Assembly: GCA_037379345.1 (NCBI GenBank)
Contig: CM074524.1
Coordinates: 20,394,750 to 20,458,749 of the forward strand
DNA length: 64,000 nt
Direction: 5' to 3'
DNA from: Perna viridis
Lineage: Eukaryota
Shown here: piece by piece, positions 4,565-29,161 of the stretch
Position numbering within the stretch: the first letter of the stretch is position 1
How the letters are laid out: every line of letters begins with the position of its first letter
Program-made: the position numbers and the translations under genes
The notes under the pieces: generated by a model
Database searches by the model: none
What the model saw: only the letters and a program-made list of their open reading frames with translations
What the model was told of the DNA's origin: nothing

Positions 4565-6048
4565 TCAATATTGAGTTTCCTTAATAGCAAATGGGGAAAA
4601 GGTACAGACAAAACAAAATAAAAAGGTCTTATTTAATATATGTGCAATTTACCTAAAATAATACTTATCGTCCTACTTATGTTTTTACTTCTCTGCATCT
4701 GCCATTCGTTTCATTTTTTAACGTTCTGTTTATTTCTAATCCTAGGATAAGATAACCACGAATGTCGACAGTGAAGTTGAGTAACATGTATATTCTACGG
4801 GAAAAACACAAGACGAATATAGCTTATACCAGACAAACAGACCCGCTGACAACATGTGATCTTTGAGATATAAATAGCTGGAAAGCAATAAGAATACTGA
4901 ATGTGACAAAAACAGACAAATCGTGAATGGCGCGTGAATTAGTTACACTTTTATCTTGATATTTTTGTCTCAATGAGAGACAGTCACGGAACTTTTCCAA
5001 ATTAAAGAAATTATTTTAATCGCCTAATTTTTTATTTTCCAAATAATTTCCAGTGTTGTTGGGAATTTTTGAGGTCATCCAATCACCTTCTGTAGTTATT
5101 TCAGGTCATGCTATCATTTCCCGATGATGTCGCTTTGTTTGAGGTCGTCTTTAGTTCAAATAGATTGGTTACCTCTGTCAAATCATAAAAAGCACTTACC
5201 GGAATTAACGTTCATCGAAATATTGTCATAATACTGTAATTTATGTCATGTAATCATGCTGAATAGAATTAAATTATTTCAGTTTGATGGTATGACTGCA
5301 CTTTGATCTAGAATGAATATCAATTTTACACAGATGAATGCAAGGATTGATATAAATATATGCGCAAATGTTTGCAATTTAAAAAAATGTTGTCCAAGGT
5401 GCTTTAACTCCGGGATCCAATCTTACCGTTTCAAACAAAGGAGATATTTGCTAATAATAATCTTTTGTTTACATTTGAGAATATTTGCCATGTGATTAAG
5501 CAATCAATAAACAGAATCATTGTCTAAATGTATACAGGTTTCCGAAACAATCGAATTCCATTGAGATAGCAGACCTAGGGCTATCAAAAACAAGATTTTA
5601 AATTCGTTAAATCATTGTTGTAACATTTTACAATATCAACAATGTATCAAAAATAGGCTCCCGAGGCAGTAAACAATGTCATGAAAAACTTGGATGGGCT
5701 ATAAAGAGTACGGGTATGGATGGCTTTATTATGTACGAATCACATAATTTGGGTTGCTGAAGAAAAATCAATTGGAAGGCCTTGGTTATATCGGATTTGA
5801 TCGGGGCTTGTCGTAGAAGTTTACCACTTCTTCGATATTGCCATTACGATATAGTACTGCTCTCAGTAACCATGGTAACTTTGAACCTAAGTAACCATTT
5901 TCTAAAGCCTTTAGAGGCTTCTCTTTTTTTTCGAACCGAGTAATCACCAACATATTAATATGCTTCATCGGAATAAAAACATTTATTCAAAATGAATTAA
6001 AATTGAAAAGGTTTCCGACTTTTTGTCACTAAAGGAAATTATACATAC

Positions 6049-6570
6049 TTTTGCTGCAGTCGACGAGTAAGGCTCATCGAACAGAGCCCATATTTTCGGT
6101 TGTATTCTTTGCCAGCAGTTTAGTTCCCCGGAACGATAGTCATCTTCCCAGCCGAATTTTTTCATTATGTCGTCTTCCGTAGGTTTATCTGTATCGAGAT
6201 CCAGACGATCGAGTGTGGCGAGTACTTCCGCTGTGTCTCGATGTGTAGTATATGTCATCCAACAACAAGGCTCAACTTGATTTGAGTCTAGACCCCAGAA
6301 TTCTAACTCGTCTTCGAAAAGAGGTCCACATACATCCGTAGGATAGTGAAGTTTTCCCGATCGGTAATAATTTAGAATTTGAGCAAATACACCCGGATGA
6401 CGATCGAAAAAGTACTCGTTCAAAACAGGATCGTAATTCGCCAGTGCTTCTGTCAATCTTGATAATCTCGTGGCCGGAATTTTCTTTAACGTTGCTTTGT
6501 AAGTCTCGTGCCGTATCCCACCGACATTGAGTATAACTCGATTGTCAGCGTCCATATTATTCATCGTCAT
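6049..6570 (-). CDS. Shaw: Shaw/Kv3 (KCNC-type) voltage-gated K+ channel, first coding exon (T1 tetramerisation domain up to S1)
   Basis: Translation [30 protein letters not shown]...[42 protein letters not shown]...VEPCCW...[15 protein letters not shown] is a Shaw T1 domain with the HX5CX20CC zinc motif. Splice donor AAA|GTATGT at 6048. In-frame TAA 12 nt upstream of ATG 6570. The ORF tail VCIISF... is intron read-through. Confidence 0.96.
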
Positions 6571-6728
6571 GATTGCGTTTTATTGAATTTGTTATCCAAG
6601 ATAGAGAAAAAAGAATTGGTTAAATCCACAAAAGACAGTTTCGTATTAGCTTAAAAACTTCAATAATGCTTTTTCCGCTTTCCCATTTTCATTCTATTTC
6701 ATCCTATCGTTGTCAGAAGGTGAAGTTC
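6571..6728 (-). other. 5' UTR part of the Shaw exon, starting at a splice acceptor
   Basis: Minus strand ttttttatgtttattgtAG|GAACTTC (AG at 6730-6729) implies a non-coding exon further right in the window. Confidence 0.7.
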
Positions 6729-8219
6729 CTACAATAAACATAAAAAAATGTTTATAAATTGTTTAGCAGACGTAACCGCGAGGTGGTAAAGCTTCTGACA
6801 AATAAATGAAAAGTACAACTTTATAGGTTAAGAATAGTTAACAGATTCAACAACCTAAATCTATGATTTGCAGTTATTTTATGATAAGCAGGACACAATC
6901 ATAGCACAGAAACGACTGATATATAATTTTCACAATTACCTATGTCATTACTCAAGTACACCGAATCAGGTTTGCATAATTCTAAGTAAATTATTCATTT
7001 TGTTTTAAAGTTCAAAGTCTGCATATCCACTTTGTGTGATACACAGTTGAAACATTTTTACAGAATGATTTATAGGAGAAGTTCATTGAAGAACTAATAA
7101 TCTATCACTAGGTGTTTATAAGGAATGGTATACAATGTAATGTCTGATAGATTATACCTTATACAAGTTCTTCGATTGTGAAATGTGTATTTGAAATTAC
7201 TTCTTGTTTTAAAATGCTTTCAATCAAGAATCGCAGATATGTTTCAATTATGGCGCGATTTGTCAACTTTTTTCTATGTTTCAACATAAAAATATTTAAC
7301 AATTAAAAAATCGATTCCATACCTCTCCCATCTTTCGACCCACCCATGAGAGTACACTATATAACATTTTAATTGCTGAAGATCAGTAAGCATATAACAA
7401 ATTAGCTTAATTAGCTTAAGATAAATGAAATTAATAAACGTACATACATGTAATTGGTAATTGTTATAAAAAAAATCAAACACATTCTCAATATTGCGAA
7501 TGCCGCAATTGAATGTTCAAAATTGATCAGTAAATGTTTTAGAAAACTGTTTCGTTTTTTTTTTTTTTTTCATCTTGGTCATGTCTTTCATAAACGCATA
7601 AAGTCATGCATGCTCTGTCCTGTAAAACTTTTGTACTTTTGGAAATATTTTTACGCTATATTTTTTATTAATCACCAAGTTAGTAATCTCGATATTCATG
7701 TAAAATTATACTAACCATCTGTCGAGGTATAAAAACGATGAATGCATGTGGACTTCTGTTAATTACTAAATAAATGATGATCAATAAATGCATTTTTATT
7801 TCGATTGTGTGAATTCATGTACATTTATTTCCCTTTTGTATGAAGTTAATTATTGAATATTTGCACATATATTTATAATATTTTGATTTGACGGGACGTA
7901 AGTACAGTTGATTGCACATTTTACTTCCAACCGTTTTCCAGTCCTGTAAAGTTTACTTTAACATGTAATTCCCTAAATCTAGACCACCCTCCCTTTCCCT
8001 TTTTGATCAGAACAACATTGATTTGTAAAATACGTGAGTTACTCCTAAACTTCTTTCTACCTTTGTCATTAAATTGTTTAATTTCAGAAGTAACACGCTG
8101 TTTGATTGAATAACAAAATTTGTCCATTATCTCATAGACCAAACTTTGTGATATGGCTGTGACGTCATCAACCTTATTTGATAATTTACTCCTTGATTTT
8201 TGATATTAAAATTAAATTA

Positions 8220-8373: not shown

Positions 8374-8585
8374 GGAGGTAGACCTAGGGTAAGGGACATA
8401 ACTCATGAAATCAGTGATATGTTTGTATCACATTCAATTTCACTAAAGTCTTTCAGGCTTTCATTTGAAACAGAATGCAATCAGTCCAAGTTAGTTTGAT
8501 GCTTACATGAAACTGATGTAAAATGCTGAATACAAACGTTCCAATGACTTGTAAGAGTTGTGTCCCTTACACTAGGTCTGCCTCC
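8374..8585. mobile_element. MITE with TTAA TSD and GG...CC termini (Kolobok-like)
   Basis: TTAA-GGAGGTAGACCTAGGGTAAGGGACATAACTC...GAGTTGTGTCCCTTACACTAGGTCTGCCTCC-TTAA. Confidence 0.85.
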
Positions 8586-8820: not shown

Positions 8821-11249
8821 TTCGTCATCTTGTATCTGGGAATGTTTAATATGAATGAGTAAATATGTCAATTATCTGAACAAAACAGGCGATCAATTAT
8901 TTAACAAGAACGATTACCTATTTCTCTTGCGATTAAACCAGTTAAAAGTGTAGAGTCTCGAGATATCAAAGGAGAGGTCTTGAAAGAAAGTAGCTTGAAA
9001 TAATTATGGTGGTAGAAATGTTTACTCTGGAGGTGTAATTGTCGGAAGGCAAATGTAATTGATCGAACTTTAAGACTTGGCAATTTTCTTGCATTCGCTT
9101 TCATTTTGATTGATGAATGATGAGGGTACGTTTCAGCTAACCTTGATGTGTTTGCCTACACACGTTTTAAAACGTTCTATTGATTTATGGAGTGATTGAT
9201 CGATTGATTTGTATATGTATGTCCTCATCGGTTAAACTATCATTTAGGTCATCATTATTGCTAAAGAGGGAAATCTTGTCTCTGTGTACATGTATGAGGT
9301 AAATAATCATTATATTGGACTTTGGAAGTGGGGTTTTATTGATAATTTTTTACATGAAAAAATGCATGAATTCAACATAGATTTCAATAAAGGGTTGGGT
9401 GCCATATAACCGCTCGACCCCCCTCCTCCCAACCCAACCCAACAACAACAATAACAACAAAATCGGCCAATGTTATATAGGAAGGATAAGTAAGAGTAAC
9501 AAACATCTTGATAATATTTCCATGTAGAAGGCCAATCGAACTAACATATGTACTGGAAATTCGTTCCGCAAAATAATTTTTTTTTAGAACAACAGATGGT
9601 AAAGACAAAGGGAATATATATCTATAAATTGTTAACAGGCCATTGATCGTAACACTATACGTGTTGCTTTTACTTATGTTTCTTGTGATTTTTTAATAAT
9701 TGCTCAGTTTTCTTTCGGTGTGTTTTACAACTGCTACAGGTTCAATGAATCTTAAATAGATCATACAAAAACAAGAGATATGCGAAAACTTAAGCTATCT
9801 CTGCGAAGCTAAATGTTGGCGGACAAGCCTCAGTTTGATTTTGTGTCATTTTAGAGCGTATATTTAGTATTTATATGTTTTTGTCTTGGGGTATGTTATC
9901 ATTATAAGTTTTAACATATAACTGAAATTCATAGGAGATGAACAAAACTAAAGCACAGATTTCTATAATTCTTAAATTACAAATTAATCCACTTATTACA
10001 ATTCAAAATTCGAAAATGTGAAATAGTACACTTATTGACAAATCGGTAAATTTCTTACAAACAAGTTTCAGATTTCACGAAATTTCCTCGATTCTAACAA
10101 AGAGCACATAGATATATAAAATTAGTTCGTCTGAAAACCTTTCTAACCATACAGCAAGCAGTCCGATATTCAATTTTAACAAAATGAGCAAATTTAAATT
10201 TTATCAAATGAACGCAACTAACAACACTAACCTGGTTAAAAAATGTGTCTGCTATTAGAAAATGGAAATAAGTTCCAAACAAACTCGTAGTTTTGTAACA
10301 TATTTTAAAGGCACACACACACACACACACAAACACCGTGTAAAATTATTGTAACAACTGCTTCGATTTAGATCAAAGTTCCAATAAAATTTCAGCCTAA
10401 TTGATAAAACCAACCCATCAGAGAATACGGGTACTTTTGTACATGTAATTGTCAATATGGCGCCCTGTCCATGTTGACGGATGTCAATCACGTACTCTCC
10501 ATTACAATAAAGTGTCAATTATCTCAACTTCGATCTAAGCTCGTTCTAAGAACGTCTTTGGTTTGTTTGCTGTTGATAATGGATAAATTGTCGGTCGCAA
10601 TCAATTAAAACACAATCACTAACGATGGTTAATCGATATCTCAACAGAGCGGAGAGTGATAGTCTTGGAGTTACTGGCTTTTGTAAATATCATGACCATT
10701 TTTGTAACATCTTGTAATTGAAAGGAAAGTGATAATTGTAGTGTTGGAGACCATTGTCTAAACTGTTAAAGAGGCGAAAGATTCAGAGTAACAGGTCGTT
10801 CTAAAGATCGTGACATATGCTCTGAAACAGTTGCCCCTCATGAGGAGAGTGATAGTGTTAGAGTTACAGGCCATTGTAAAAATCATGACAATTATAATAT
10901 AAAATTTTTGCAGCTTCTAAAAATACTTTGAATAAGTTTTAATTGTACTTATTTATAAATAAACTGATCAATGGTTTCATTGGAGCCAAATCAATATCTG
11001 GGCGTTGCCAAATATCATATATCTTTGAAAATTGTTGGTATGAAAAAATATAGATATACCTAAAGTGTCACGAATATATTCCTAGATTCATATGAAAATC
11101 GTATGATAATTATAAAGTAATTTACAAATGATGGTCATATGCATATCACATGATACTCATGTAAGAATTGGCTTTCCAGAATCTTAGTGCCTTGATTACT
11201 ATTACATGGGATTATCATGTATTCATGAAAACAAATCATTATCAAAGGT

Positions 11250-12328: not shown

Positions 12329-15300
12329 TCCCCCCCCCCAAAAAAACAAAGATTTTGGGGGTATATGCTCCCCGAATAAGAACACGTTTAACACAAGAAG
12401 AAAACAGGAGACAGCTGTTGTATTGCGTTCTATACCCGACAAAAAAAAACTAACAAACAAAATATAGGAAGACACTGGCTGCCCTGTTGTGTTCTATACC
12501 AAAATAAAACAGGAAGACAAATGTTGGCCGATTCTCCCCACATTCGATACACGAAAAGAAACAGGAGAACATATGTGTCCTATTTTGACACCAATCGTTA
12601 CACTGACAAACCAGATGAACACAAGCTGTCTGATTTTGATTACGTCAAACAGTAAGTTAATATCTGCCTAATTCTTATAACGTGCAAACCTGAAAAATAC
12701 TGGAGGTTAATTTCTGCTTAAATATTATAACGTATAAACCAAAACAAAAATACAGCTGCCTTGTTCTTATCACGTTCAATACACAAAGAAACGGTAAATA
12801 GAAGCCAGTAGATTAGAATCGTCGGAGAAAATCGATAGCGGACTGTCATTTGAAGCAAGTAAATATTTTCCTTGTCAACACAATGAATTGTTCTTCAGTA
12901 AAGTGGCAAATATTCCATAATTTAGAATGGTTGCTGAGATGCAGGGAAGAAAATCGAACACGAATGAACAATGTCTTGTATAATACCCAGGTGTTGAAAT
13001 CGATGTAGATGATTGTCATCCGTGACGGTCTTAAGTTTCATTGTTTAAATAAATCCTTGTTTCTTTCTATATTTCATGTTTTGTATATTATTTTGCATTG
13101 CAACTCCAGTTAATAGTTACCAACATTGAAATTTTATATTTAATTTAACATTCAACACAAGTTCTACTATAAACAAAAAGCCCTCGTACTGAATTTTTTT
13201 AAATTGACGAAAGATCTATAGTCCTACTCTCACCGTTGATGTAGCAGGTAGAAAGCGACGCTTTTGGTCGTCAGTAGTCTTTACGCTCATTTTACACTTT
13301 AGATCCGCATTTTATTTTAGATTCATGCCATTGTTTTCGTTCGTTCGTTCGTTCGCCCTTTATTTTGAATTAGATGTTAACCTGCAGGATGTTGGTCGCA
13401 AAAGTAAGAGAAAATAATTTGAATTGAAGTCATAAAATGCAAAACCATGATGATTACATTACCTTTTTAACATGAAGATCGTAACTCACATTTTTTTATA
13501 GATCAAAACATTTTATTGTTCTTATATTTTGTCGTTATTCAACAAGTAATAATAAAGCAAAAACAAACAATACTGCTCTTCGTTCATTATTCAGTCTTTG
13601 AGTGTTTGAATGTTATATATGTCAACAAGGTTCATTGAATCAGTATTTTTGTGTTAAGCTATACATTATCAATTGTCAGTCTAAGATATATCAGCAGAGT
13701 TATCTATATACTCACATAAAAGCAACAGATCTACAGAAGCTGAATATTAAGTTTTCTTGGTAATAACTAATGTTTGTTATTTAGATCTAAAGATTATTGT
13801 ATGTTAAACACATCGAGATCTGCAAAAAATACTGTTTCACCTTTTGTACCTTAACAATATAGCTTTTACAGTTCTGGTTATTTTTTACTTGTCTAAACTC
13901 AGTTCATAGAATACTCTTTACAACCACTGTATACCGAAAAGCAAATAATCACATGCTGATACATTTAGTTCATACTCAAAACATTCAGTGACTGGTAGAT
14001 AATCAAATTTTTGATATTTTAATGCGAGTTGCAGTTTTCATGATTGGTAATAGTCTTCGTGTTTGAAAATTAAAACTTAACCTGTATTCACCAATTCTTA
14101 TTCGAGTATATGTGCTTGTTATCTTTTAAACATCGCCAAAAGAGGCATATTCCCAAATGGACTGTAGTAGGTAAAACACTACTCCAGTTCTTGGTCTTTG
14201 TCATTGCTCTTTCAGACAGTACAAGAATGTACATATGAGACATAACGTTGATTGGCCCTAAATACACATCATACTAAATGTTATATTTCTAGAAGTTAGA
14301 GTAACCTTATACGACAAAACAGTAAAACATATAAGTATATCCCTGATGCGTTGAAATGATTAATTATACTCGAGTCAAATTGTAGCAATAACGAGATCTA
14401 ATAACATATTAGACCGATAATAGTTTCCCAGTCTTTTCATTTAGACAGTTATATCGAGACTTTATAGCATGGCTCTCACTTATGTATAATTATTTACCCA
14501 AGAGCATAGATGGCGTTTAACAATTTTGTTGTATACCATCTGCATAATTTCCCATAAGTACTTCTCTTGACAGACAGATAATATGAACAGTGTTATCGGG
14601 GGTAGTATCAAATGCGTTAATAGCTTCTAAATTTGGCATAAGGTCAGAATTCAAGTAATAGTCATGATTCGAAGAAATTATAAGACTTATGAATGACATG
14701 TTTCAAGAAAAGAATTGTTTATAAATTTGACATGAGCTCAGAATACAAATAAAAAGAGGTTTACGAATAACATTTACAGGGTATGACAAACGCACATCCA
14801 CAATGTGCTTTGAAACCATGCTGACTGTCATTCTTATTTAATTAATTCTTATTTAAGATTTTTTTTAAATTAAGTACTCTATATAAACAGTTACTGAAAC
14901 TAAAAGCTGTTATTACAGAATAGTAGATGTACAATGTATATCTGAAATGACATATAGAACAATACGGATTATGATGCTGGGTACTACTTTATAGACTGAA
15001 GAAATGAATGAAAGAATAGGGTCTGGAAGTCTCGTACTAGTTTCATTTTCCTTACCGGAATTTCTGATGTAGAACGTATTGAAATCCGAAGACCAGTCTG
15101 CATTCTATTGTTTACTTCCGGGATGGTTTCTATTACTCTATTACAATGCGAAATCGTCTATTCTATGCCTTTTCTTCACTCTTTTATCACATGTGGAAAT
15201 AGATATTTGTCATTTTTATTGCTATTTTTACACGAAAACATGTTTTGCTTTTATTTACTGAACCTAACGCTCTGCAAATGACAAATCTCTATGTATTTGA

Positions 15301-19838: not shown

Positions 19839-21479
19839 GAACCGTTTTAGCAAAGAAAGATTTAAATGTTAGTAATGTCTTAAAAGTACTAATGAACCGA
19901 GGTTGTACGTAATCAAAATTTTTCAGTTTGAATTATTTTGGTGCCAAGAAATAAAAGAACATGAAAGTAGACAGCAAAAATATATTGTTCGATGAGAAGT
20001 TTAACCCATGGCTAGTTGGCAAAGAAATGTAAATATCAACAGCAGCCCAGGTGGGTAGGGTCGTTACGTAATCAAAATGTAGTAATCCCGGTTACTCATA
20101 AACAAGTATATGACTGTCGTTAAAGTAATGTAATGTGGGAAGATAAGGTCCAAATTTGGCCGCAAAATCAACTATTTGCGTGAATGAGTTACACACCCAG
20201 CAATAAGCAAAAGTATGAAAAGGTTTTGATTTGATTCATTAGCAGGTATATAATCATTAAGAATCTTTTGCGTTCTCAGTGCACTTTCCCTTCAAGTAAA
20301 GGCATAATGTGCTTGGATGAGTTATGGTAGTTACAACTCATTTAAGCAAATATTGAAATTTAAATGCAGGTCATACCTTTCTTTCGATTCGCAAAAAAAT
20401 AACCAACTTTGATTATTAAATGATGTGACCTGAACTTTCTTTATGATAATATTTTCCTGGTTTATATACACAAATATCTTAGGGATTAAATATTTAACAC
20501 ACGAAGACTCCAATTAACCCAACTTTATAATAAATATACCTTATCAATACTCCAGTCTTTTTTTACATATAATTTCCTGTTCAGAGAAAATAACTTTGGA
20601 AAGCAAATGGAGGATTTTGAAAAAGAGGAATAAAATTATTCTCTTACAAAGTATGCCTTAATTCGTGGCTATCAGCTGATATAACTAAGGGATTATTTGT
20701 TGTTTTTAATACTTTTGTTTTGTTCTGTTTTGTTTTTAATTTTGTTTTGCTTTGGTTTTTTGTTTTCCTTTTTATTTGGGGGGTGTTATGTTTGTGTTTT
20801 GTTTGTTTTGTCATGTTGGGTTATTTTTCGTCGACATCAACAAATAATATGCTTTGATGTATAGTCACGCCATGAAACATTTGCACGATATCTACAGGAT
20901 GAAAGGGTCTGTCTAAGCTTGATGTCTGTTAATATCACTGAGTGCACGTACATCGTCTTTTCATCAATAACAGTAAATATAATGACAATGAATCTTTTTT
21001 TCATTTCCTTTTCATTTTTACACTTGTTTATAAAATGCTGAACAACACTGCCACCTAGGACATTCGTTACTTGAGTTTAAACAAGGACAATATCAACATC
21101 GATTTGTATCCTCAAACGTCAACATGTGCTTCCTTCTCATTTCAAAATGTTTGGATGCGCCCATGATTCAGTATTTATAAGTAGGGATGCACACAGGTGG
21201 GTGGATTGAACAATGTTTGATCATCGACGTAGGTTAACCACACAAAAATAAATTATCTATCACTCAAACATTGCTAAACATCAAACCAGCCATAAAATAA
21301 ATGCATCTGTTCAAAAACCATTAGAGAATTAGATTTTTTAATGTATGCTGACGCATTGCAAATTTGAAAAAAAAAATACTTAAATGCGTGATGTGTTCGA
21401 ATAACCATTGAGTGCATTGCCTGTTTGATATGCAGCTAATGGGGTTACTTTAAAAACCGGCTGTGTGATTGTTAATAAC

Positions 21480-21634
21480 TTAATCGGGTTTATCTAAGTA
21501 AAAGGTAAACCAATTTAATAAAAGAGAAATTAATCTGTTCTTTCACAACGTTAAACCGGAATCCGTTCCGGATGTATCCCGATTTTATATTTACGTCTAA
21601 CGCTGCCATATTTTTTGAAACACCACATCAAAAC
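21480..21634 (+). repeat. Ngaro split direct repeat A1 (155 bp)
   Basis: ttaatcgggtttatctaag...caccacatcaaaac matches 26747-26901, with one C/T difference seen. Confidence 0.95.
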
Positions 21635-21671
21635 AGATAATCAATCCAAGCCATCCTCCTTAAAACGCAGC

Positions 21672-22847
21672 ATGAAACCTGCCAAAAGAAAAAGAGCAGC
21701 CCCTAGAAGGAATCAACAAGACGGAGATGCTACAAAAAACCAGAAAAAGAAGAAGACTTTGCAGACTGCTCAGACGTCATCGTCGCCACGCCAATCCAGA
21801 AAAATACCCTCGACAGCTTCCACGTCGTCCAGCGAAATTGATGCCACTGATGCCCCTACTCAAGATCCCTCGACCAGAAAGTCAACTTTATCTGTGAGCC
21901 ATGGTCCGGTCGTCAATATCATAGCCGATGAAGCATTGCCTCCCATTCCTGATGAGTCTCGTATGCCTGTTCCTGTTACCGCACAAGAGGTCCCACCCCA
22001 GCAAAGCTCGAGTGGAATTGGTAGGTTTATCAATACTTCACAAACCTTAGCACGTCCATTTTACTCTGGGTCTCCTGTTCCCCCCCCCCTTTCCGATCCT
22101 GATACACAAAGGTGTGGCGATATGTCGTACATCAATCAATTGCCCGATTCTGTGTCTAGTGTCTTTACTCCTATATCATCTCACGTCCCAAGTAAAATAA
22201 AAGAGAAAGTATGGGCAGGTGAATTTGTAGATCTAAACTTGCTTCTCAAATCAGCTCGAGATTTAGCAGATAACTGTGAGTTAGATGGAGAGCTCACTAT
22301 AAAAGGGGGTACCCTTGCCGTTGTAAAACAACAAAAAACACAGTTTAAAAACATTGAAACTTGGACTAATGCATTCATGATATATGCAAGCATTATTTTA
22401 GAGAAATGGCCCCAAAAAGGGTTAGAACTTTTCAAATATATGCAAACAATTCGACTTGCAGCCTCCAGGGGCTATTTTCGAGGTTGGGTTCACTATGATG
22501 AACAATACAGGTTGCGTAAAGCGGCGTCCCCAACTTCTTCTTGGGGAATAGTTGATATGGAACTTTGGATGATGTGTGTTTCAACTCCTTATACACCCCC
22601 TTCTCAGTCAGTAGGTCATGGGTCGGTTCAAGACCCTTCAAATCATAGACCTGGACATTCCTCACCAACTTCGTCTGTTTCTGTGGTCAGTTGGGGGCAA
22701 AACAAGACTAGCGCTGGTCAAACAACAGGCCCATGTAGAATGTTTAATAAGGGTTATTGCAAGTTCGGGTCAAAATGTATTTTTACCCATCAATGTAAAA
22801 AATGTAGAAAATATCACCCAATAACAAAATGTCCACAGAATCAATAA
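21672..22847 (+). CDS. Gag-like ORF1 of the Ngaro element
   Basis: First ATG at 21672 (the track start is TTG inside A1). Basic and S/T/P-rich N-terminus; KIKEKVWAGEFVDLNLLL and GWVHYDEQYR motifs typical of DIRS/Ngaro gag; C-terminal zinc fingers CRMFNKGYCKFGSKCIFTHQCKKCRKYHPITKC. Confidence 0.88.
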   Translation: MKPAKRKRAAPRRNQQDGDATKNQKKKKTLQTAQTSSSPRQSRKIPSTASTSSSEIDATDAPTQDPSTRKSTLSVSHGPVVNIIADEALPPIPDESRMPVPVTAQEVPPQQSSSGIGRFINTSQTLARPFYSGSPVPPPLSDPDTQRCGDMSYINQLPDSVSSVFTPISSHVPSKIKEKVWAGEFVDLNLLLKSARDLADNCELDGELTIKGGTLAVVKQQKTQFKNIETWTNAFMIYASIILEKWPQKGLELFKYMQTIRLAASRGYFRGWVHYDEQYRLRKAASPTSSWGIVDMELWMMCVSTPYTPPSQSVGHGSVQDPSNHRPGHSSPTSSVSVVSWGQNKTSAGQTTGPCRMFNKGYCKFGSKCIFTHQCKKCRKYHPITKCPQNQ

Positions 22848-22968
22848 ATCGATTTGAGTCTGACATTAATGACAATGTCATATTATGTAATATTGTAAAT
22901 ATGTTGTGATTACAAATTTATAAATCGAACTTTTTCATTTCAGGATTGACCCGTTTTATATACACTAG

Positions 22969-24552
22969 GTAATTCTCCTATCAGAGTGAGCGAAGTTAAA
23001 AAAGCTCTGAAAAAGTACCCATGTCAAGAAAAAGCATATGCTTTAATTAATGGATTACAATATGGCTTTGATATGAAATACTCAGGTCCCCGGAGACCCT
23101 TTGAAGCTAATGGCAAAAAAATTTTTGGCGAACGTTTACTCGCAGCCAGACAAAAAATTCAGAAAGAAATTTCAATGGGTAGAATAGCCGGTCCATTTAT
23201 TAACCCCCCTTTCCCTACATTTCGAACTTCACCAATCTCTGTAATTCCAAAAAAAATCAAGTTCAGAATTTCGTTTAATACATAATTTGTCATTCACTTC
23301 CCAGAACTCAGTAAACGATTTTATTGAGAGAGAATTCTGTTCCGTATCCTACTCTTCGATCGACGATGCGGTGGACATGATTCAGAAGCTTGGCCCAAAT
23401 TCCTTTCTTGCCAAATGTGATATAAAATCGGCTTTCCGACTGTTCAGAATTTCGCCACAGGATTTTGATTTGTTTGGTTTTAAGTTCGAAAATTTGTATT
23501 ACTTTGATAAGTGTTTACCTATGGAGGCCTCTATAAGTTGTGCCCTATTCGAATCTTTCTCCACTGCCCTTCATTGGTATGTAAAAAAAGAATCAAACTC
23601 TGAGAATATTCTTCACTATTTAGATGATTTTCTATTTGGGGGAGTGTCAGTTCCAGAATGTAAAGAGGTTTTAATTTGCTTCCAGGACTGCTGTAAGTTG
23701 TGGGGCGTTCCTTTAGCGGATGAAAAGACAGTTGAACCTACAGAAATATTAATTTTCTTAGTAGAGTTTGACACTATCAATATGATTATGAGACTCCCTT
23801 TGGAGAAAATAACTGAACTTCGGGAAAAAATTCTGTACTGTCTTGGTTGTTCAAAAATTACGTTAAAAGAATTACAATCCTTATTAGGGTCCCTAAACTT
23901 CGCTTGCCAAGTTGTGGTTCCTGGTAGAGCATTTTGTCGTAGGCTCATTGATGCAACTTGTAACGTACAAAAAAGTTACTATAGAATAAGAGTCACCAAG
24001 GCTATGAAAGACGATTTAGAGGTTTGGTTACAATTCTTGTCGGAATACAATGGGACTACAGTAATTCTAGATAAATTTTGGCCTTCCAATTCTGATTTGA
24101 ATCTTTTTTCGGACAGTGCAGGAGGTAAAGAAAAGGGATTTGGTATTTTCTTTGATAACAGATGGGCTCAGGCCTGTTGGCCTAGTTCTTGGGTTAACTC
24201 TGACATTTTAACCGACATTACCTTTCTGGAATTATTCCCTGTTGTAGTAGCTCTGAACATCTGGGGAGAATTGTTAAGGAATAAACGAATTTTATTTCAC
24301 GTCGACAATCAAGCAATTGTTGCAATTGTCAACAAAAAATCATCCCGTTCTCCACGAGTTATGTCATTAGTCAGGAAACTTGTTTTGGACTGTTTAAAAT
24401 ATAACATACTAATAAAATGTGAACACATCCCCGGAGTTATGAATAAAGTATGTGATGCTCTTTCTCGTTGTGATTTTCAGAAGTTCCAGACTCTTTGTCC
24501 GACTGCCGAACCACGTCCATGCGCCATTCCATCCCATCTTTGGAAAATTTAA
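22969..24552 (+). pseudogene. Reverse transcriptase/RNase H of the Ngaro element, frameshifted at an A8 run (23249-23256)
   Basis: Track ORFs 22986-23285 and 23287-24552 join as SPISVIPKK-SSSEFRLIHNLS if one A is removed. Motifs: KCDIKSAFR, YLDDF, LQSLLGSLNF, FSDSAG, ITFLELFPV, HVDNQA, HIPGVMNKVCDALSR. Confidence 0.93.
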
Positions 24553-25457
24553 AAGTCGAAACGAATTCTTTATTCGATAGTTCCATGGCTTCGAGTTCCT
24601 GGAAGACTTATAGAACAGCAGTCGCTTCTTTTCAAAATTTCTGCTCGCTTTATAATTTTGATGTTATTTGGCCAATCCCCGTAGAGTTATTGTCCCATTA
24701 CATTGCATTTCTTTCTTGTGAGGGTAAATCTTTTTCAACTGTCTCTACTTACCTTTCAGCTCTGAGTTACGCTCACAAATTAAATAATGTTATTGACAAC
24801 ACTAAATCTTTTCTCGTTACAAAGTTGTTACAAGGTTTTCGCAGGAAAAATCCAACAAAACCCGACATAAGAATTCCGATTACTTTTGATCTACTAAAAA
24901 AGCTTATTTCCTCGTTACAATGGATCTGTCACTCCGATTACGAATCATACATGTTTGCCTCCACCTTTTCTCTAGCCTACTTTGCCTTATTAAGGGTAGG
25001 AGAATTTGCCGTAACAACAACTGACAATGAAAGTGGACACGCTCTCGATCTTCGAGATATCTCTTTTTTAGATAAAAATACAGTTTTGCATGCCAATATT
25101 CGCAGTTCTAAAACAGATCAAAAGCGATCCTCAATTAAGCTTATATTAACAAAGCAGGAAAATGTATCAGTTTGTCCAATTTTTCTGTTACATCGTTATT
25201 TGTCTATCCGTTTCTCGGGTCAAAATGGTTCTGAAAAACTTTTTGTTCATTTTAACGGCAAGCCTTTGACAAAATATCAGTTTTGTGCTATGCTGGAGAA
25301 ATCTCTAAAGTTTTGCGAGATACCATTACACATTCGCTCACATTCTTTCAGAATAGGCCGTGCGTCCGATCTAGCTAAAGAGGGCATAGACGACGAGGCA
25401 ATTAAAAAATTGGGTCGCTGGAAATCTAGTTGTTTTGAGAGATATATTCGTCTTTAA
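24519..25457 (+). CDS. Tyrosine recombinase of the Ngaro element
   Basis: Catalytic motifs present: LLRVGE (R), SKTD (K), HSFRIG (HxxR), GRWKS (W), RYIR (Y). Overlaps the end of RNase H. Confidence 0.95.
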   Translation: MRHSIPSLENLKVETNSLFDSSMASSSWKTYRTAVASFQNFCSLYNFDVIWPIPVELLSHYIAFLSCEGKSFSTVSTYLSALSYAHKLNNVIDNTKSFLVTKLLQGFRRKNPTKPDIRIPITFDLLKKLISSLQWICHSDYESYMFASTFSLAYFALLRVGEFAVTTTDNESGHALDLRDISFLDKNTVLHANIRSSKTDQKRSSIKLILTKQENVSVCPIFLLHRYLSIRFSGQNGSEKLFVHFNGKPLTKYQFCAMLEKSLKFCEIPLHIRSHSFRIGRASDLAKEGIDDEAIKKLGRWKSSCFERYIRL

Positions 25458-25528
25458 ATTCGATCTGTTTTGCGAGTTTACATGTACTTCTGACTGATTC
25501 ATTTTTATTACAATTTCCTAATTTTTAG

Positions 25529-26124
25529 GTTCAAAATCTGTTTGGATTTTTGGCTCATCGATTGTTTATTGGGCCCGTAGACGAGCTGACTTTCGCACTG
25601 GGGGGATCCACCTTGGACTGCAAAGGCTAGGATATGTTGTTAGATGGTTCGGGGAAAGAAGAATGAAATGGAGTGAGTTGTCGGCCACAGTCTCGCGTGC
25701 TAGAGAGAAATATCCACTTCCCGCTATGATCGTAATACACCTTGGGTCTAATGATATTGGTTTACGGCCTTGTTCTGATATAATAGATGATATCAAAACA
25801 GACACCCTTAGATTTAAATTATTATTTCCTAATACCAGAGTCATTTGGAGTGAACTTCTGATGAGACGGTACTGGCATAGCGCAACAAAAAGTGGCACTC
25901 GCTTAGAGAAGGTCCGAAAACGCATAAACACTGCAATAAAAAATTTCTATTTAACTGAGGGCCTTGCCGAGATAAGACACCCGAATATTAGAGCATCTGA
26001 GATCGACCTCTACCGGTTTGATGGGGTTCACTTGACCGATCTCGGAAATGACGTACTTCTAAACAACTTTGAAGGTGCTTTGGAAACCTTTTTATCCTCA
26101 CCCGATGTTCGTTCATTCCCTTAG
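25529..26124 (+). CDS. SGNH/GDSL hydrolase (esterase) ORF of the Ngaro element; probably spliced in, as no ATG precedes block I
   Basis: Frame extends 44 codons upstream of the track ATG (SKSVWIFGSSIVYWARRR..., block I). Also HLGSND (block III) and DGVHL (block V). In-frame TAA at 25519 and acceptor atttttAG at 25527-25528. Confidence 0.88.
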
Positions 26125-26252
26125 GATTGTCACATTCGTTAATATATGTTATCAAATGTTGAAAGGAATATAAATGATTTATTATTTGAAGCGGTAGGGC
26201 CGCGGGGGGGGGGGGGGGTAAGATATTTAAACGTGTATAGACACGCCCATTT

Positions 26253-26750
26253 GGCGGAATCTGGTAAGATAAGGGGACACTATCCTTTCCTTAATTGTAC
26301 GTCGGGTCATATCAATAAAACTTTCCTACGCTTTACCGTTGGAAGTTGGTCTAGACCATCTCATGCCTCCATGAGTGGTCGGTTCTTTTCTGATCACCAG
26401 ATTGAATTTGGCCAGGGTATTCTAAATACAAATAAATAATCAAAATAAATAATAAACTCACTCCCATGTTTTTATAAATATTAAATGAAAAAAGTGGTTT
26501 CTACCATGGGGTGACAAATGGTATGGGCTGGCGTACTGGAAAATCGTGTCCCTCGTTCTCTCAAGGTACCTTGAGGAATGTGAGCATCCATTGTTTACCA
26601 ATGGTGCACAGAGTTGTCCGTATACCCCTGCGTTTGGCATTCTGTTTCCCTATCTTGTCAATTCCTCTCTTGCAGTGAGCTGTGGCCGTTATTAGCCATT
26701 TATATTGTTTCTTGAATTTTTATAAGCCAAACAATTGATTCTTTGATTAA
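26253..26750 (+). repeat. Ngaro split direct repeat B1 (498 bp)
   Basis: ggcggaatctgg...ctttgattaa matches 27334-27831, with one T/C difference seen. Contains clustered AATAAA motifs. Confidence 0.95.
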
Positions 26751-26901
26751 TCGGGTTTATCTAAGTAAAAGGTAAACCAATTTAATAAAAGAGAAATTAA
26801 TCTGTTCTTTCACAACGTTAAACCGGAATCCGTTTCGGATGTATCCCGATTTTATATTTACGTCTAACGCTGCCATATTTTTTGAAACACCACATCAAAA
26901 C
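26747..26901 (+). repeat. Ngaro split direct repeat A2
   Basis: Copy of A1, joined to B1 through a shared TTAA. Confidence 0.95.
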
Positions 26902-26963
26902 CCCTCCATCCTCCCCTTCCACATTTACCACCTGTTGCTGCTGCTGTTTTATAATTTTTTCAG

Positions 26964-27172
26964 GGTCAAAACATTCGATCGACTTAAACTTCCGGGGATC
27001 TGAGAGTTTCGAGCAGAGTAGACTGTTAAATGAGGAAATCCTCATGAACTTTTGTGAATACAGACTCTGGACACTCAAACTGGTTGTGAATCCGACAGAT
27101 CAGCTCGGAGAATACGAACTCATGGACAACAACATTGGTTTGGAGACTGTTTCTTTAATTGGATTTGTTTAA
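26964..27172 (+). CDS. Candidate extra exon/ORF (~69 aa, unknown function) in the A2-B2 spacer
   Basis: Acceptor ttttataattttttcAG (26962-26963), open phase-1 frame GSKHSIDLNFRG...SLIGFV*, then an AT-rich tract and AATAAA at 27305. Confidence 0.45.
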
Positions 27173-27333
27173 TGATTTTGATTTATTTTATGATGCACCA
27201 AAGACTGACTTAAAACGTTAAATTTTAGCTAATTTGATTTCATTTTTATTGTATTATTATATATATATATTTTCAGAATAACTTGTGTCATAAATATAAT
27301 TAATAATAAACAGTTCTTGTCACAGTCTGTCTG

Positions 27334-27831
27334 GGCGGAATCTGGCAAGATAAGGGGACACTATCCTTTCCTTAATTGTACGTCGGGTCATATCAATAAA
27401 ACTTTCCTACGCTTTACCGTTGGAAGTTGGTCTAGACCATCTCATGCCTCCATGAGTGGTCGGTTCTTTTCTGATCACCAGATTGAATTTGGCCAGGGTA
27501 TTCTAAATACAAATAAATAATCAAAATAAATAATAAACTCACTCCCATGTTTTTATAAATATTAAATGAAAAAAGTGGTTTCTACCATGGGGTGACAAAT
27601 GGTATGGGCTGGCGTACTGGAAAATCGTGTCCCTCGTTCTCTCAAGGTACCTTGAGGAATGTGAGCATCCATTGTTTACCAATGGTGCACAGAGTTGTCC
27701 GTATACCCCTGCGTTTGGCATTCTGTTTCCCTATCTTGTCAATTCCTCTCTTGCAGTGAGCTGTGGCCGTTATTAGCCATTTATATTGTTTCTTGAATTT
27801 TTATAAGCCAAACAATTGATTCTTTGATTAA
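27334..27831 (+). repeat. Ngaro split direct repeat B2
   Basis: Copy of B1, ending in TTAA at the right boundary of the element. Confidence 0.95.
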
Positions 27832-29161
27832 GGTAAATCATTACGATGTGCAAATAATATATATATATATTGCGACCTTCTGGTCGTTTCAATATCGAAA
27901 ATTAAACAAAATATAAGTAAATTCAGTGTCCATTCGCATTGGAAAATATTTTGTGTACCCGAAAACTTTACATTCCTTATATATTAAGCTCTTAATACGA
28001 ACGACATGTGATATCTGTTTCATAATCCTTTTCAAGTATCCTAGGCGTAAAATACAAACAGATCAGAAACATTTCAAGTAGACGAGTAATGCATATCAAA
28101 GTTTGATCTGAGTTATCCAAACACATCAGAAATATGTCAAGTGGACGTGGAACCAGGCAACTCTAAATCTACGTGACTAACGGAATATACTGCATTAACT
28201 GTCAAAGTTTTACGTTGTTCCAGGTGGTTGAAAAATGCATGTCGTATGCTCAATGACGTAAGCAGGTGAATGTAAATAGTCGCCGAACGCTGAATCATCG
28301 GGCTATGAACAGTTAGGGAATTGTTCCCAACACTTGTGTCTACACCTAATTAACGTATGATAGATAAGAGATAAACGGGTTTTCACCATAATTTTACATT
28401 AACATGACTTTAACCTTCAAAAACCAATGTGTATATCTAAATAACGTCATTTCGAAATCCGATAAATCACTTTTCAACATCGTTGCATATCTATATGACT
28501 TTTAACTTCCCAAACAAATGTTTACCCCTTATTAACGTCAATTTCAAGGGCGATTAATCGTTTTTTCAGATTTTATATCGATATCTACATGACGTTAACC
28601 GCAATCTGAAATTACACCGTCGTGGGATATAATCTTTATCATTCGTACAATCGTTCAAATCATCTGCAGATGCAGCATAAAGCAAACCAAATGGTATTTG
28701 TAAATCGTTTAATAACTGAAGGACACGATGTCCATTAGCAATGATTTCTGCAGATAAATATGAAGTAAACCGCGAAATCATTCAGTTTTCATTTACTTTA
28801 GAATAAAAGATGATGAAAAAGAGAAAATTAGAAAAAAAACATAAACAACATGCATACAGGAACAAAAACCAAGAAGGAAAACGGAAGAAAAAGAGCAACC
28901 GTGATTTCATCGAAGGCAAGAATCATGGCAAAGGACAACGTTCATTTGCAGGGTAAGCGTTCTAAGTTGCAAAGTTTTGATACTAAAAGTTAAAAAGAAG
29001 GCGTTCTTTTTTACAATTTCCACGTTTTCACTTTCTTTTCTGTTGTCTGACCAAGAATATATTTCAAATCTTACATTATATCATTTTATTTAGACTTGAC
29101 ACACAGGAGGCTTATAGCGTTGTTGTCGATCAGTTATAGAAACCACATTTCTAGGGATTTT

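Follow-up and report, generated by a model that had tools for sequence, protein, structure and literature searches.

Evidence for probable alternative splicing from a shared gag leader in a Ngaro-type retrotransposon of Perna viridis

The window analysed here is a stretch of 64,000 nucleotides (nt) of the Perna viridis genome (contig CM074524.1 of GenBank assembly GCA_037379345.1, forward-strand positions 20,394,750 to 20,458,749), and positions 21480-27830 on its plus strand, counted from the first letter of the window, hold a copy of a Ngaro-type tyrosine-recombinase (YR) retrotransposon. Downstream of a gag-like open reading frame (ORF), this element carries frames for a reverse transcriptase/RNase H (RT/RH), the YR and an SGNH hydrolase, and neither the RT nor the hydrolase frame has an ATG ahead of its first conserved motif. 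The question raised by this locus is how such frames come to be translated. We consider it likely, with good confidence, that the answer is alternative splicing, in which one donor within gag serves phase-1 acceptors in front of RT/RH, YR, hydrolase and a fourth exon in the terminal spacer. The sites and their phases are present in the element, spliced DNA copies occur in two species, and gene models of four other bivalve species have the same architecture.

The original prediction, made from the letters of this stretch, had named the leader, its donor and acceptors for RT, hydrolase and a spacer ORF, together with their phases, the in-frame stops and the absence of early ATGs, and every one of these was recovered when the sequence was rechecked. 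The features on which the argument turns are given below, with a slash at each exon boundary.

21672-22020, plus strand: shared leader exon, 349 nt from the gag ATG to the donor, 116 codons plus 1 nt (phase 1)
22021-22026, plus strand: 5' splice donor GTAGGT, following an exon that ends ...ATTG at 22020
22928-22944, plus strand: probable RT acceptor ...ctttttcatttcag/GA, exon start 22944, a cag site stronger than that at 22969
Exon start 22969, plus strand: the RT acceptor first described, tacactag/GTAATTCTCCT, phase 1, an alternative site
Exon start 24481, plus strand: YR acceptor ...cgttgtgattttcag/AA (gattttcag/AA), phase 1, placed by homology
24481-25457, plus strand: YR exon and ORF, with a Phage_integrase match
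Exon start 25529, plus strand: hydrolase acceptor atttttag/GTTCAAAA (...cctaatttttag/GT), phase 1
25529-26124, plus strand: SGNH hydrolase exon and ORF, in a frame open from 25522 to 26124
Exon start 26964, plus strand: spacer acceptor ttttttcag/GGTCAAAA (...tgctgctgttttataattttttcag/GG), followed by 69 open codons, the stop ending at 27172

The leader encodes 116 amino acids (aa), among them 18 K/R and 42 S/T/P residues, and opens with a basic N-terminus, MKPAKRKR..., that resembles a nuclear localization signal. The RT frame has an in-frame stop at 22947, upstream of the exon start at 22969, and no ATG appears in it before codon 42 (window copy) or codon 55 (other copies). The hydrolase acceptor is preceded by a CTGAC motif at 25490 and an in-frame stop at 25519, and the earliest ATG of the hydrolase (25663, codon 48 of the open frame) lies downstream of the block I GSS at 25552.

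The first line of evidence is a second copy of the element in the same genome. Copy L010 (G000:C5:26692603-26695463) lacks exactly 22021-25528, an interval with GT..AG ends, while A1 and the full B1-A2-spacer-B2 end, that is, the terminal repeats and the spacer, are retained. Its junction, GGAATTG/GTTCAAAATC, unites the donor and the hydrolase acceptor that had been predicted, and it gives an uninterrupted ORF of 317 aa from the gag ATG through the hydrolase. A six-frame search of the genome with the hydrolase, aimed at divergent Ngaro families, returned about 150 matches, many of which start at query residue 2-3 with short open frames upstream; the open frame containing the hydrolase is 356 aa long in L010, as against 200 aa in unspliced copies.

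The natural ORF of L010 also leads to annotated proteins of other bivalves. A search with it returned 326-aa RefSeq proteins of Mytilus edulis and M. trossulus at 100 % coverage, and we checked the exon structures of the RefSeq models discussed here against their own protein sequences. The M. trossulus gene lies within a Ngaro element that has all its parts (A1, gag, RT, YR, hydrolase, B1, A2, spacer, B2). In XP_063439102 (P0002, isoform X1), a 382-nt exon (10001-10382, phase 1, CCTTG/gtatgt) is joined to 13922-14520 at the acceptor ccttttag/GTTCAAAAGC, which matches the window both in position and in its Gly-Ser-Lys junction, and the M. edulis model has an identical structure. The same cluster holds more 326-aa RefSeq entries, from M. 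edulis and, in one case, M. galloprovincialis, which are known by their length and clustering. A second M. trossulus product, XP_063439103 (isoform X2, P0142, 146 aa), joins the leader to ...tgctgctgttttattcatttttcag/GC in the A2-B2 spacer and continues for 18 codons; it came to light in the cluster listing and was absent from the homologues retrieved with the Mytilus leader by itself.

Models from two further genera place a phase-1 donor ahead of the polymerase. Leader exons of 220 nt in Ostrea edulis (P0063) and 157 nt in Ruditapes philippinarum (P0052), both phase 1, are spliced to the start of the RT frame. The Ostrea locus also has a 386-aa integrase-domain product that begins at the same ATG as the leader-RT model, and joining the leader donor to the YR acceptor ctctcgttcacag/TG at 8411 reproduces this length exactly. 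The original prediction had allowed that the YR might lie downstream of RT in the leader-RT mRNA; there is instead a phase-1 acceptor belonging to the YR itself, with exon start 24481 in the window, which had not been listed. This acceptor falls on the Q codon of a conserved RT C-terminal motif, three codons after an in-frame stop at 24471.

The leader-to-RT intron, too, is missing from a genomic copy. In Mytilus coruscus, copy L053 lacks exactly this intron, its junction reads CCTTG/GTTACAC, and its annotated product, P0138, reads ...NNLG/YTHLYSLGNSP across it. In the Mercenaria mercenaria locus L051 the leader and RT form one contiguous ORF of 602 aa (6001-7809), YR and hydrolase come next, and no remainder of gag could be detected; the locus is probably another spliced copy or a member of a gag-less lineage.

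Could the M. coruscus and Perna copies have lost these intervals by some other route? On a reading without any splicing, the GT and AG sites would be there by chance, the L010 and M. coruscus copies would owe their gaps to template switching by the reverse transcriptase at a GGT microhomology of 3 nt, and the RefSeq models would be artefacts. Several observations lend this substance and count against the splicing that we propose. The junctions of both 'spliced' DNA copies have a 3-nt ambiguity, the donor fits the consensus at 4/6 positions and splice-site strength is unremarkable, and 22021-27333 (5.3 kb) contains 17 YAG acceptors with at least 10/13 upstream pyrimidines. The RefSeq XP_ models were predicted automatically, and it is conceivable that they were seeded by reads stemming from intronless copies. 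Template-switch deletions are, moreover, common in this family. Eight other internal-deletion copies (L011/L020, L012/L025, L017/L026, L018/L029, L019/L023, L021, L022/L027 and L024/L028) have breakpoints that cluster at 22593-22730 joined to 25868-26114; in most of them the two sides of the joint share a short run of letters, of 8 nt at most. These eight, however, serve as a control for deletions that do not arise by splicing: they cluster elsewhere, none has GT..AG ends, and their form is typical of template switching. In contrast, the deletions in L010 and L053 fall exactly on sites that had been predicted beforehand or were annotated independently, in two species and at two different introns, and independent annotations of several species share the donor and acceptors. 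We therefore regard chance sites and template switching as a very improbable account of these data. Site strength itself, which is not above chance, was rejected as evidence for splicing, so that the case rests on the spliced DNA copies and on the conservation of position and phase between genera. As an observation apart, the eight independent deletion copies, whose breakpoints differ from one another, all keep the 5' part of gag and the 3' end of the hydrolase.

That conservation, which the original prediction had named as a check across genomic copies and related mollusc Ngaro families, was borne out at both levels. Within the genome, at least 15 copies have a complete leader at 97-100 % identity, and the donor GT is kept in all 14 of the other leader-bearing copies that are unspliced at the donor. 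Between genera, one donor, in phase 1 and with an exon ending in G, and in-frame phase-1 acceptors ahead of RT, YR, hydrolase and a spacer exon are found in the window, Mytilus, Ostrea and Ruditapes (4/4 genera), the acceptors lying directly ahead of the conserved start of each enzyme. Donor phase and acceptor positions are retained at 40-55 % protein identity, even as the leader varies from 157 to 382 nt in length.

Which of the two RT acceptors is used deserves separate comment. The exon start at 22969, on which the original prediction had settled, is indeed in the RT frame and in phase 1 in every sampled copy. The exon start at 22944, which had been named as the alternative, is out of the RT frame by 1 nt in the window copy because the T-run at 22954-22957 differs in length there; in the seven other sampled copies, all of which differ from the window in this run, it is in frame (7/7). 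The product in those copies would read G-LTRLYTLGNSP, homologous to the Mytilus G-YTHLYSLGNSP, and both the spliced M. coruscus copy and P0138 use the site homologous to 22944. From these alignments, 22943/22944 is more likely to be the acceptor than 22968/22969.

The spacer splice presents a different picture. Its acceptor lies 55-68 nt past A2 in the window, Mytilus and Ruditapes, and the flanking sequence of the window and that of Mytilus are almost the same, so that the site named in the original prediction is conserved; the ORF proposed behind it ('ORFX') is not, the frames there being 69, 19 and 24 codons long and non-homologous in the window, Mytilus and Ruditapes, respectively. Selection thus appears to act on the splice and not on 'ORFX'.

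Splicing may also be real and yet serve no purpose for the element. If it were incidental or imposed by the host, a mis-splicing that disables the element in the manner of the spliced L1 copies found integrated in genomes, then unspliced RNA would be the template for RT, YR and hydrolase, whose translation would begin by re-initiation, after internal entry or at non-AUG codons. In keeping with such a view, both spliced DNA copies are defective derivatives, and the YR has in-frame ATGs soon past its acceptor. The expectation that neither RT nor SGNH block I would have an ATG of its own upstream holds in three of the four genera (the window, Mytilus and Ostrea, where the catalytic serine of the hydrolase lies upstream of the first ATG) and fails in Ruditapes, where the RT frame opens with an ATG and a hydrolase ATG sits at block I. 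Two further points tell against a functional scheme: beyond its basic N-terminus the leader is poorly conserved, and the RT frame is not open throughout in any copy sampled.

The RNA data bear on the same issue. We examined Logan contigs of four Perna viridis runs (X1, X2, X6 and X18) whose type was guessed as probably RNA, and of which X2 and X18 are near-identical and probably one data set deposited twice. Contrary to what the original prediction had anticipated, none of these contigs joins 22020 to 22944, 22969, 24481, 25529 or 26964, in assemblies from which minor isoforms are lost and where the absence of a joint consequently proves little. The contigs cover much of the element and read without a splice through the donor and through the acceptors of the hydrolase and the spacer. 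Their only joints are 22658 to 26095 and 22664 to 26019, which are those of deletion copies L011 and L021, and a B1/B2 repeat wrap. One of them shares the T-run length difference at 22954-22957 with other copies. Splicing of the element RNA in Perna viridis itself is what we infer.

Against disabling or host-imposed splicing stands, above all, the cross-genus record: phase-1 donor and acceptor positions have been held over four genera despite the changes in protein sequence and leader length, every junction yields a long in-frame fusion, and cryptic sites would not stay in phase for four separate ORFs. The hydrolase, moreover, has no ATG before its catalytic serine in three genera. We judge incidental splicing to be unlikely, less so than the complete absence of splicing, and prefer alternative splicing from the shared leader as the means of expression. 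Gag-RT frameshifting was considered as well and rejected: gag stops at 22847 and does not overlap the RT frame, which in other copies opens only about 19 codons ahead of GNSP, and this lack of overlap argues against frameshifting in the family of the window element.

Two side observations concern these contigs. The L011 deletion type is the most deeply covered form among them (27x), and in one X1 contig the 24 letters upstream of 22857 match neither the window nor the compared loci.

How, then, would the element express its proteins? Full-length unspliced RNA would serve as both genome and Gag mRNA, as in a simple retrovirus, and the donor 349 nt into gag would be joined alternatively to 22944 (or 22969), 24481, 25529 or 26964, acceptors that are each predicted to precede, by a few codons, the point at which conservation of the downstream ORF begins. 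Each spliced mRNA would then begin at the gag AUG, and each product would bear the 116 N-terminal Gag residues, including the basic KRKR motif. This division of labour, with Gag from unspliced RNA and leader fusions from RNAs spliced at one donor, is that of the original prediction, and it finds support in L010, L053 and the Ostrea, Ruditapes and Mytilus RefSeq models. The leader may supply a start codon together with a signal for nuclear import or for association with RNA or Gag; across genera the basic start M(K/P)P.KR.R alone is conserved, and with so little conservation elsewhere in the leader the tag function is a conjecture. The leader-to-spacer RNA would encode little beyond the leader itself, which changes what had been put forward as a leader-ORFX fusion, and its splice would remove B1-A2. 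Where B1-A2 is kept, a spliced RNA evidently remains competent for copying and insertion.

The wider form of this proposal, which we hold with less assurance and consider somewhat favoured on balance, is that bivalve Ngaro elements, and perhaps Ngaro elements generally, use full retrovirus-style splicing: RT/RH, YR and the SGNH esterase would each be fused to a short, basic N-terminus from Gag, a fourth splice, itself conserved, would give a leader-only product, and spliced RNAs that keep B1-A2 would seed gag-less and enzyme-less lineages.

To place the element among its relatives, its other parts are required; they follow in the order A1, gag, RT/RH, YR, SGNH hydrolase, B1, A2, spacer and B2.

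21480-21634, plus strand: A1 terminal repeat (155 nt), differing from A2 by 1 nt
21672-22847, plus strand: gag-like ORF (391 aa), C-terminal CCCH-type zinc knuckle with weak CCCH Pfam matches, expected to be read from unspliced RNA
22971-24552, plus strand: RT/RNase H ORF, with an RVT_1 match
26253-26750, plus strand: B1 repeat (about 498 nt), from repeat comparison
26747-26901, plus strand: A2 repeat, from repeat comparison
26902-27333, plus strand: A2-B2 spacer, 432 nt
27334-27830, plus strand: B2 terminal repeat, from repeat comparison

On every structural test this is an ordinary member of Ngaro. The split direct repeats are present, with A1 and A2 99 % and B1 and B2 99.8 % identical, and an RVT_1 match (E=3.7e-9) precedes a Phage_integrase match (E=2.4e-11), the RT/RH-before-YR order of Ngaro. 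No ORF has a Pfam match to a methyltransferase, the point that separates Ngaro from DIRS1/PAT, and since the RT/RH ORF overlaps the start of the YR there is no space for such a domain. SGNH blocks I, III and V are all present (GSS at 25552, GSND at 25744, DGVH at 26020) and do not vary across the alignment with homologues from Mytilus and elsewhere; the Lipase_GDSL_2 Pfam match of the window hydrolase is sub-threshold (E=0.0015), and the same domain is among the precomputed domains of the homologues P0001 and P0002. The window proteins are 41 % (gag), 71 % (RT) and 56 % (YR) identical to those of the Mytilus element. The window copy would be a slightly damaged member of a young family: an A-run at 23249-23256 breaks its RT frame, a break that is absent from most copies. 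Because the RT frame is interrupted in every copy sampled, activity of the family may have ceased.

Ngaro elements of fish, amphibians, echinoderms and fungi go back to Goodwin & Poulter 2004, as related in PMC9210276 and PMC7192593. According to these two accounts, published Ngaro elements are like that of the window in their A1...B1-A2-B2 repeats, in their order of gag-like, RT-RH and YR genes, in having no methyltransferase and in the SGNH hydrolase ORF after the YR. The downstream ORFs of Ngaro and DIRS are described as overlapping or frameshifted, and the Ngaro hydrolase as having 'no proven function' (PMC9210276, PMC3783388). Introns or spliced subgenomic mRNAs go unmentioned in those accounts, whereas the window element has a phase-1 acceptor for each downstream ORF and one gag donor. 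Nowhere in the literature searched, outside which lie the original subscription papers with a possible earlier mention, is native splicing described for either Ngaro or DIRS elements, in keeping with the statement in the original prediction that no such scheme was known for YR retrotransposons.

Individual components of the scheme nonetheless have counterparts in other systems, each with its differences. In avian sarcoma-leukosis virus the major 5' donor lies inside gag, so that the spliced env mRNA starts at the gag AUG and its product carries the first Gag residues; there, however, 6 Gag codons are fused and Pol is made by Gag-Pol frameshifting, whereas 52-127 residues would be fused in bivalve Ngaro, and the polymerase, too, would come from a spliced mRNA. 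Foamy virus Pol is made from its own subgenomic spliced RNA, with no Gag-Pol readthrough or frameshift, although that Pol has its own AUG, is unfused to Gag and belongs to an element with long terminal repeats (LTRs) and an integrase, in contrast to the predicted Gag-leader fusion and the tyrosine recombinase of bivalve Ngaro. The spliced integrated retrotransposed elements of L1 and the spliced gag RNAs of copia/BARE show that the RNA of an element can be spliced and that the spliced form can undergo reverse transcription and insertion, giving intron-less copies comparable to L010 and L053, but they involve one intron or incidental sites and not a set of in-phase acceptors, one per gene. Lastly, in rice tungro bacilliform virus a distal ORF without a start context of its own (ORF IV) is expressed from an mRNA in which splicing has put a short leader ORF from the 5' end in frame with it; this virus, unlike the window element, is a plant pararetrovirus, lacks a recombinase and has one splice event.

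If correct, the scheme explains how ORFs without start codons are translated and gives the correct full-length RT, YR and esterase sequences, which are required for biochemistry. It would also extend the logic of retrovirus-like subgenomic mRNAs to a lineage of retroelements without LTRs or integrase, and account for a class of intron-less derivative copies. There is a consequence for annotation as well: several bivalve RefSeq entries filed as 'uncharacterized protein LOC... isoform X' correspond to Ngaro spliced products and would be spliced transposon mRNAs. Separately, some Ngaro RT proteins are filed under metagenome-assembled genomes of bacterial symbionts (Candidatus Thiodiazotropha, Sedimenticola), probably through contamination of the bins by host DNA.

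Several features of the termini were also noted. An AATAAA at 27305-27310 lies 29 nt before B2 in the window and has a counterpart in Mytilus (L048, about 15590), the distance to B2 being some 25-40 nt over the two; its position suggests that element transcripts end about where B2 begins. Copies L004, L013 and L016 are 5'-truncated, with a complete A repeat (ending at 21634) fused to 23870, 25094 and 25235, respectively, and look as if the A repeat had been added after premature termination of cDNA synthesis, which bears on how termini are regenerated. Eight copies (L003, L007, L013, L016, L017, L018, L022 and L024) end at the B1/A2 boundary (about 26750) without A2-spacer-B2, so that the family exists in 'A...B' and 'A...B-A-spacer-B' forms. 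In some copies (L010 at 948-961; L012; L011) the last 3-14 nt of B stand directly upstream of A1, and the flanks of the window element (21460-21480, 27825-27840) resemble a B-end/A-start junction around TTAA. Such flanks suggest recombination between a B/A circle junction and a look-alike target. Finally, the tandem copies L046 and L047 (G000:C15:2.95 Mb) have about 309 nt of unrelated sequence in the place of 21744-22187, an interval that includes the donor.

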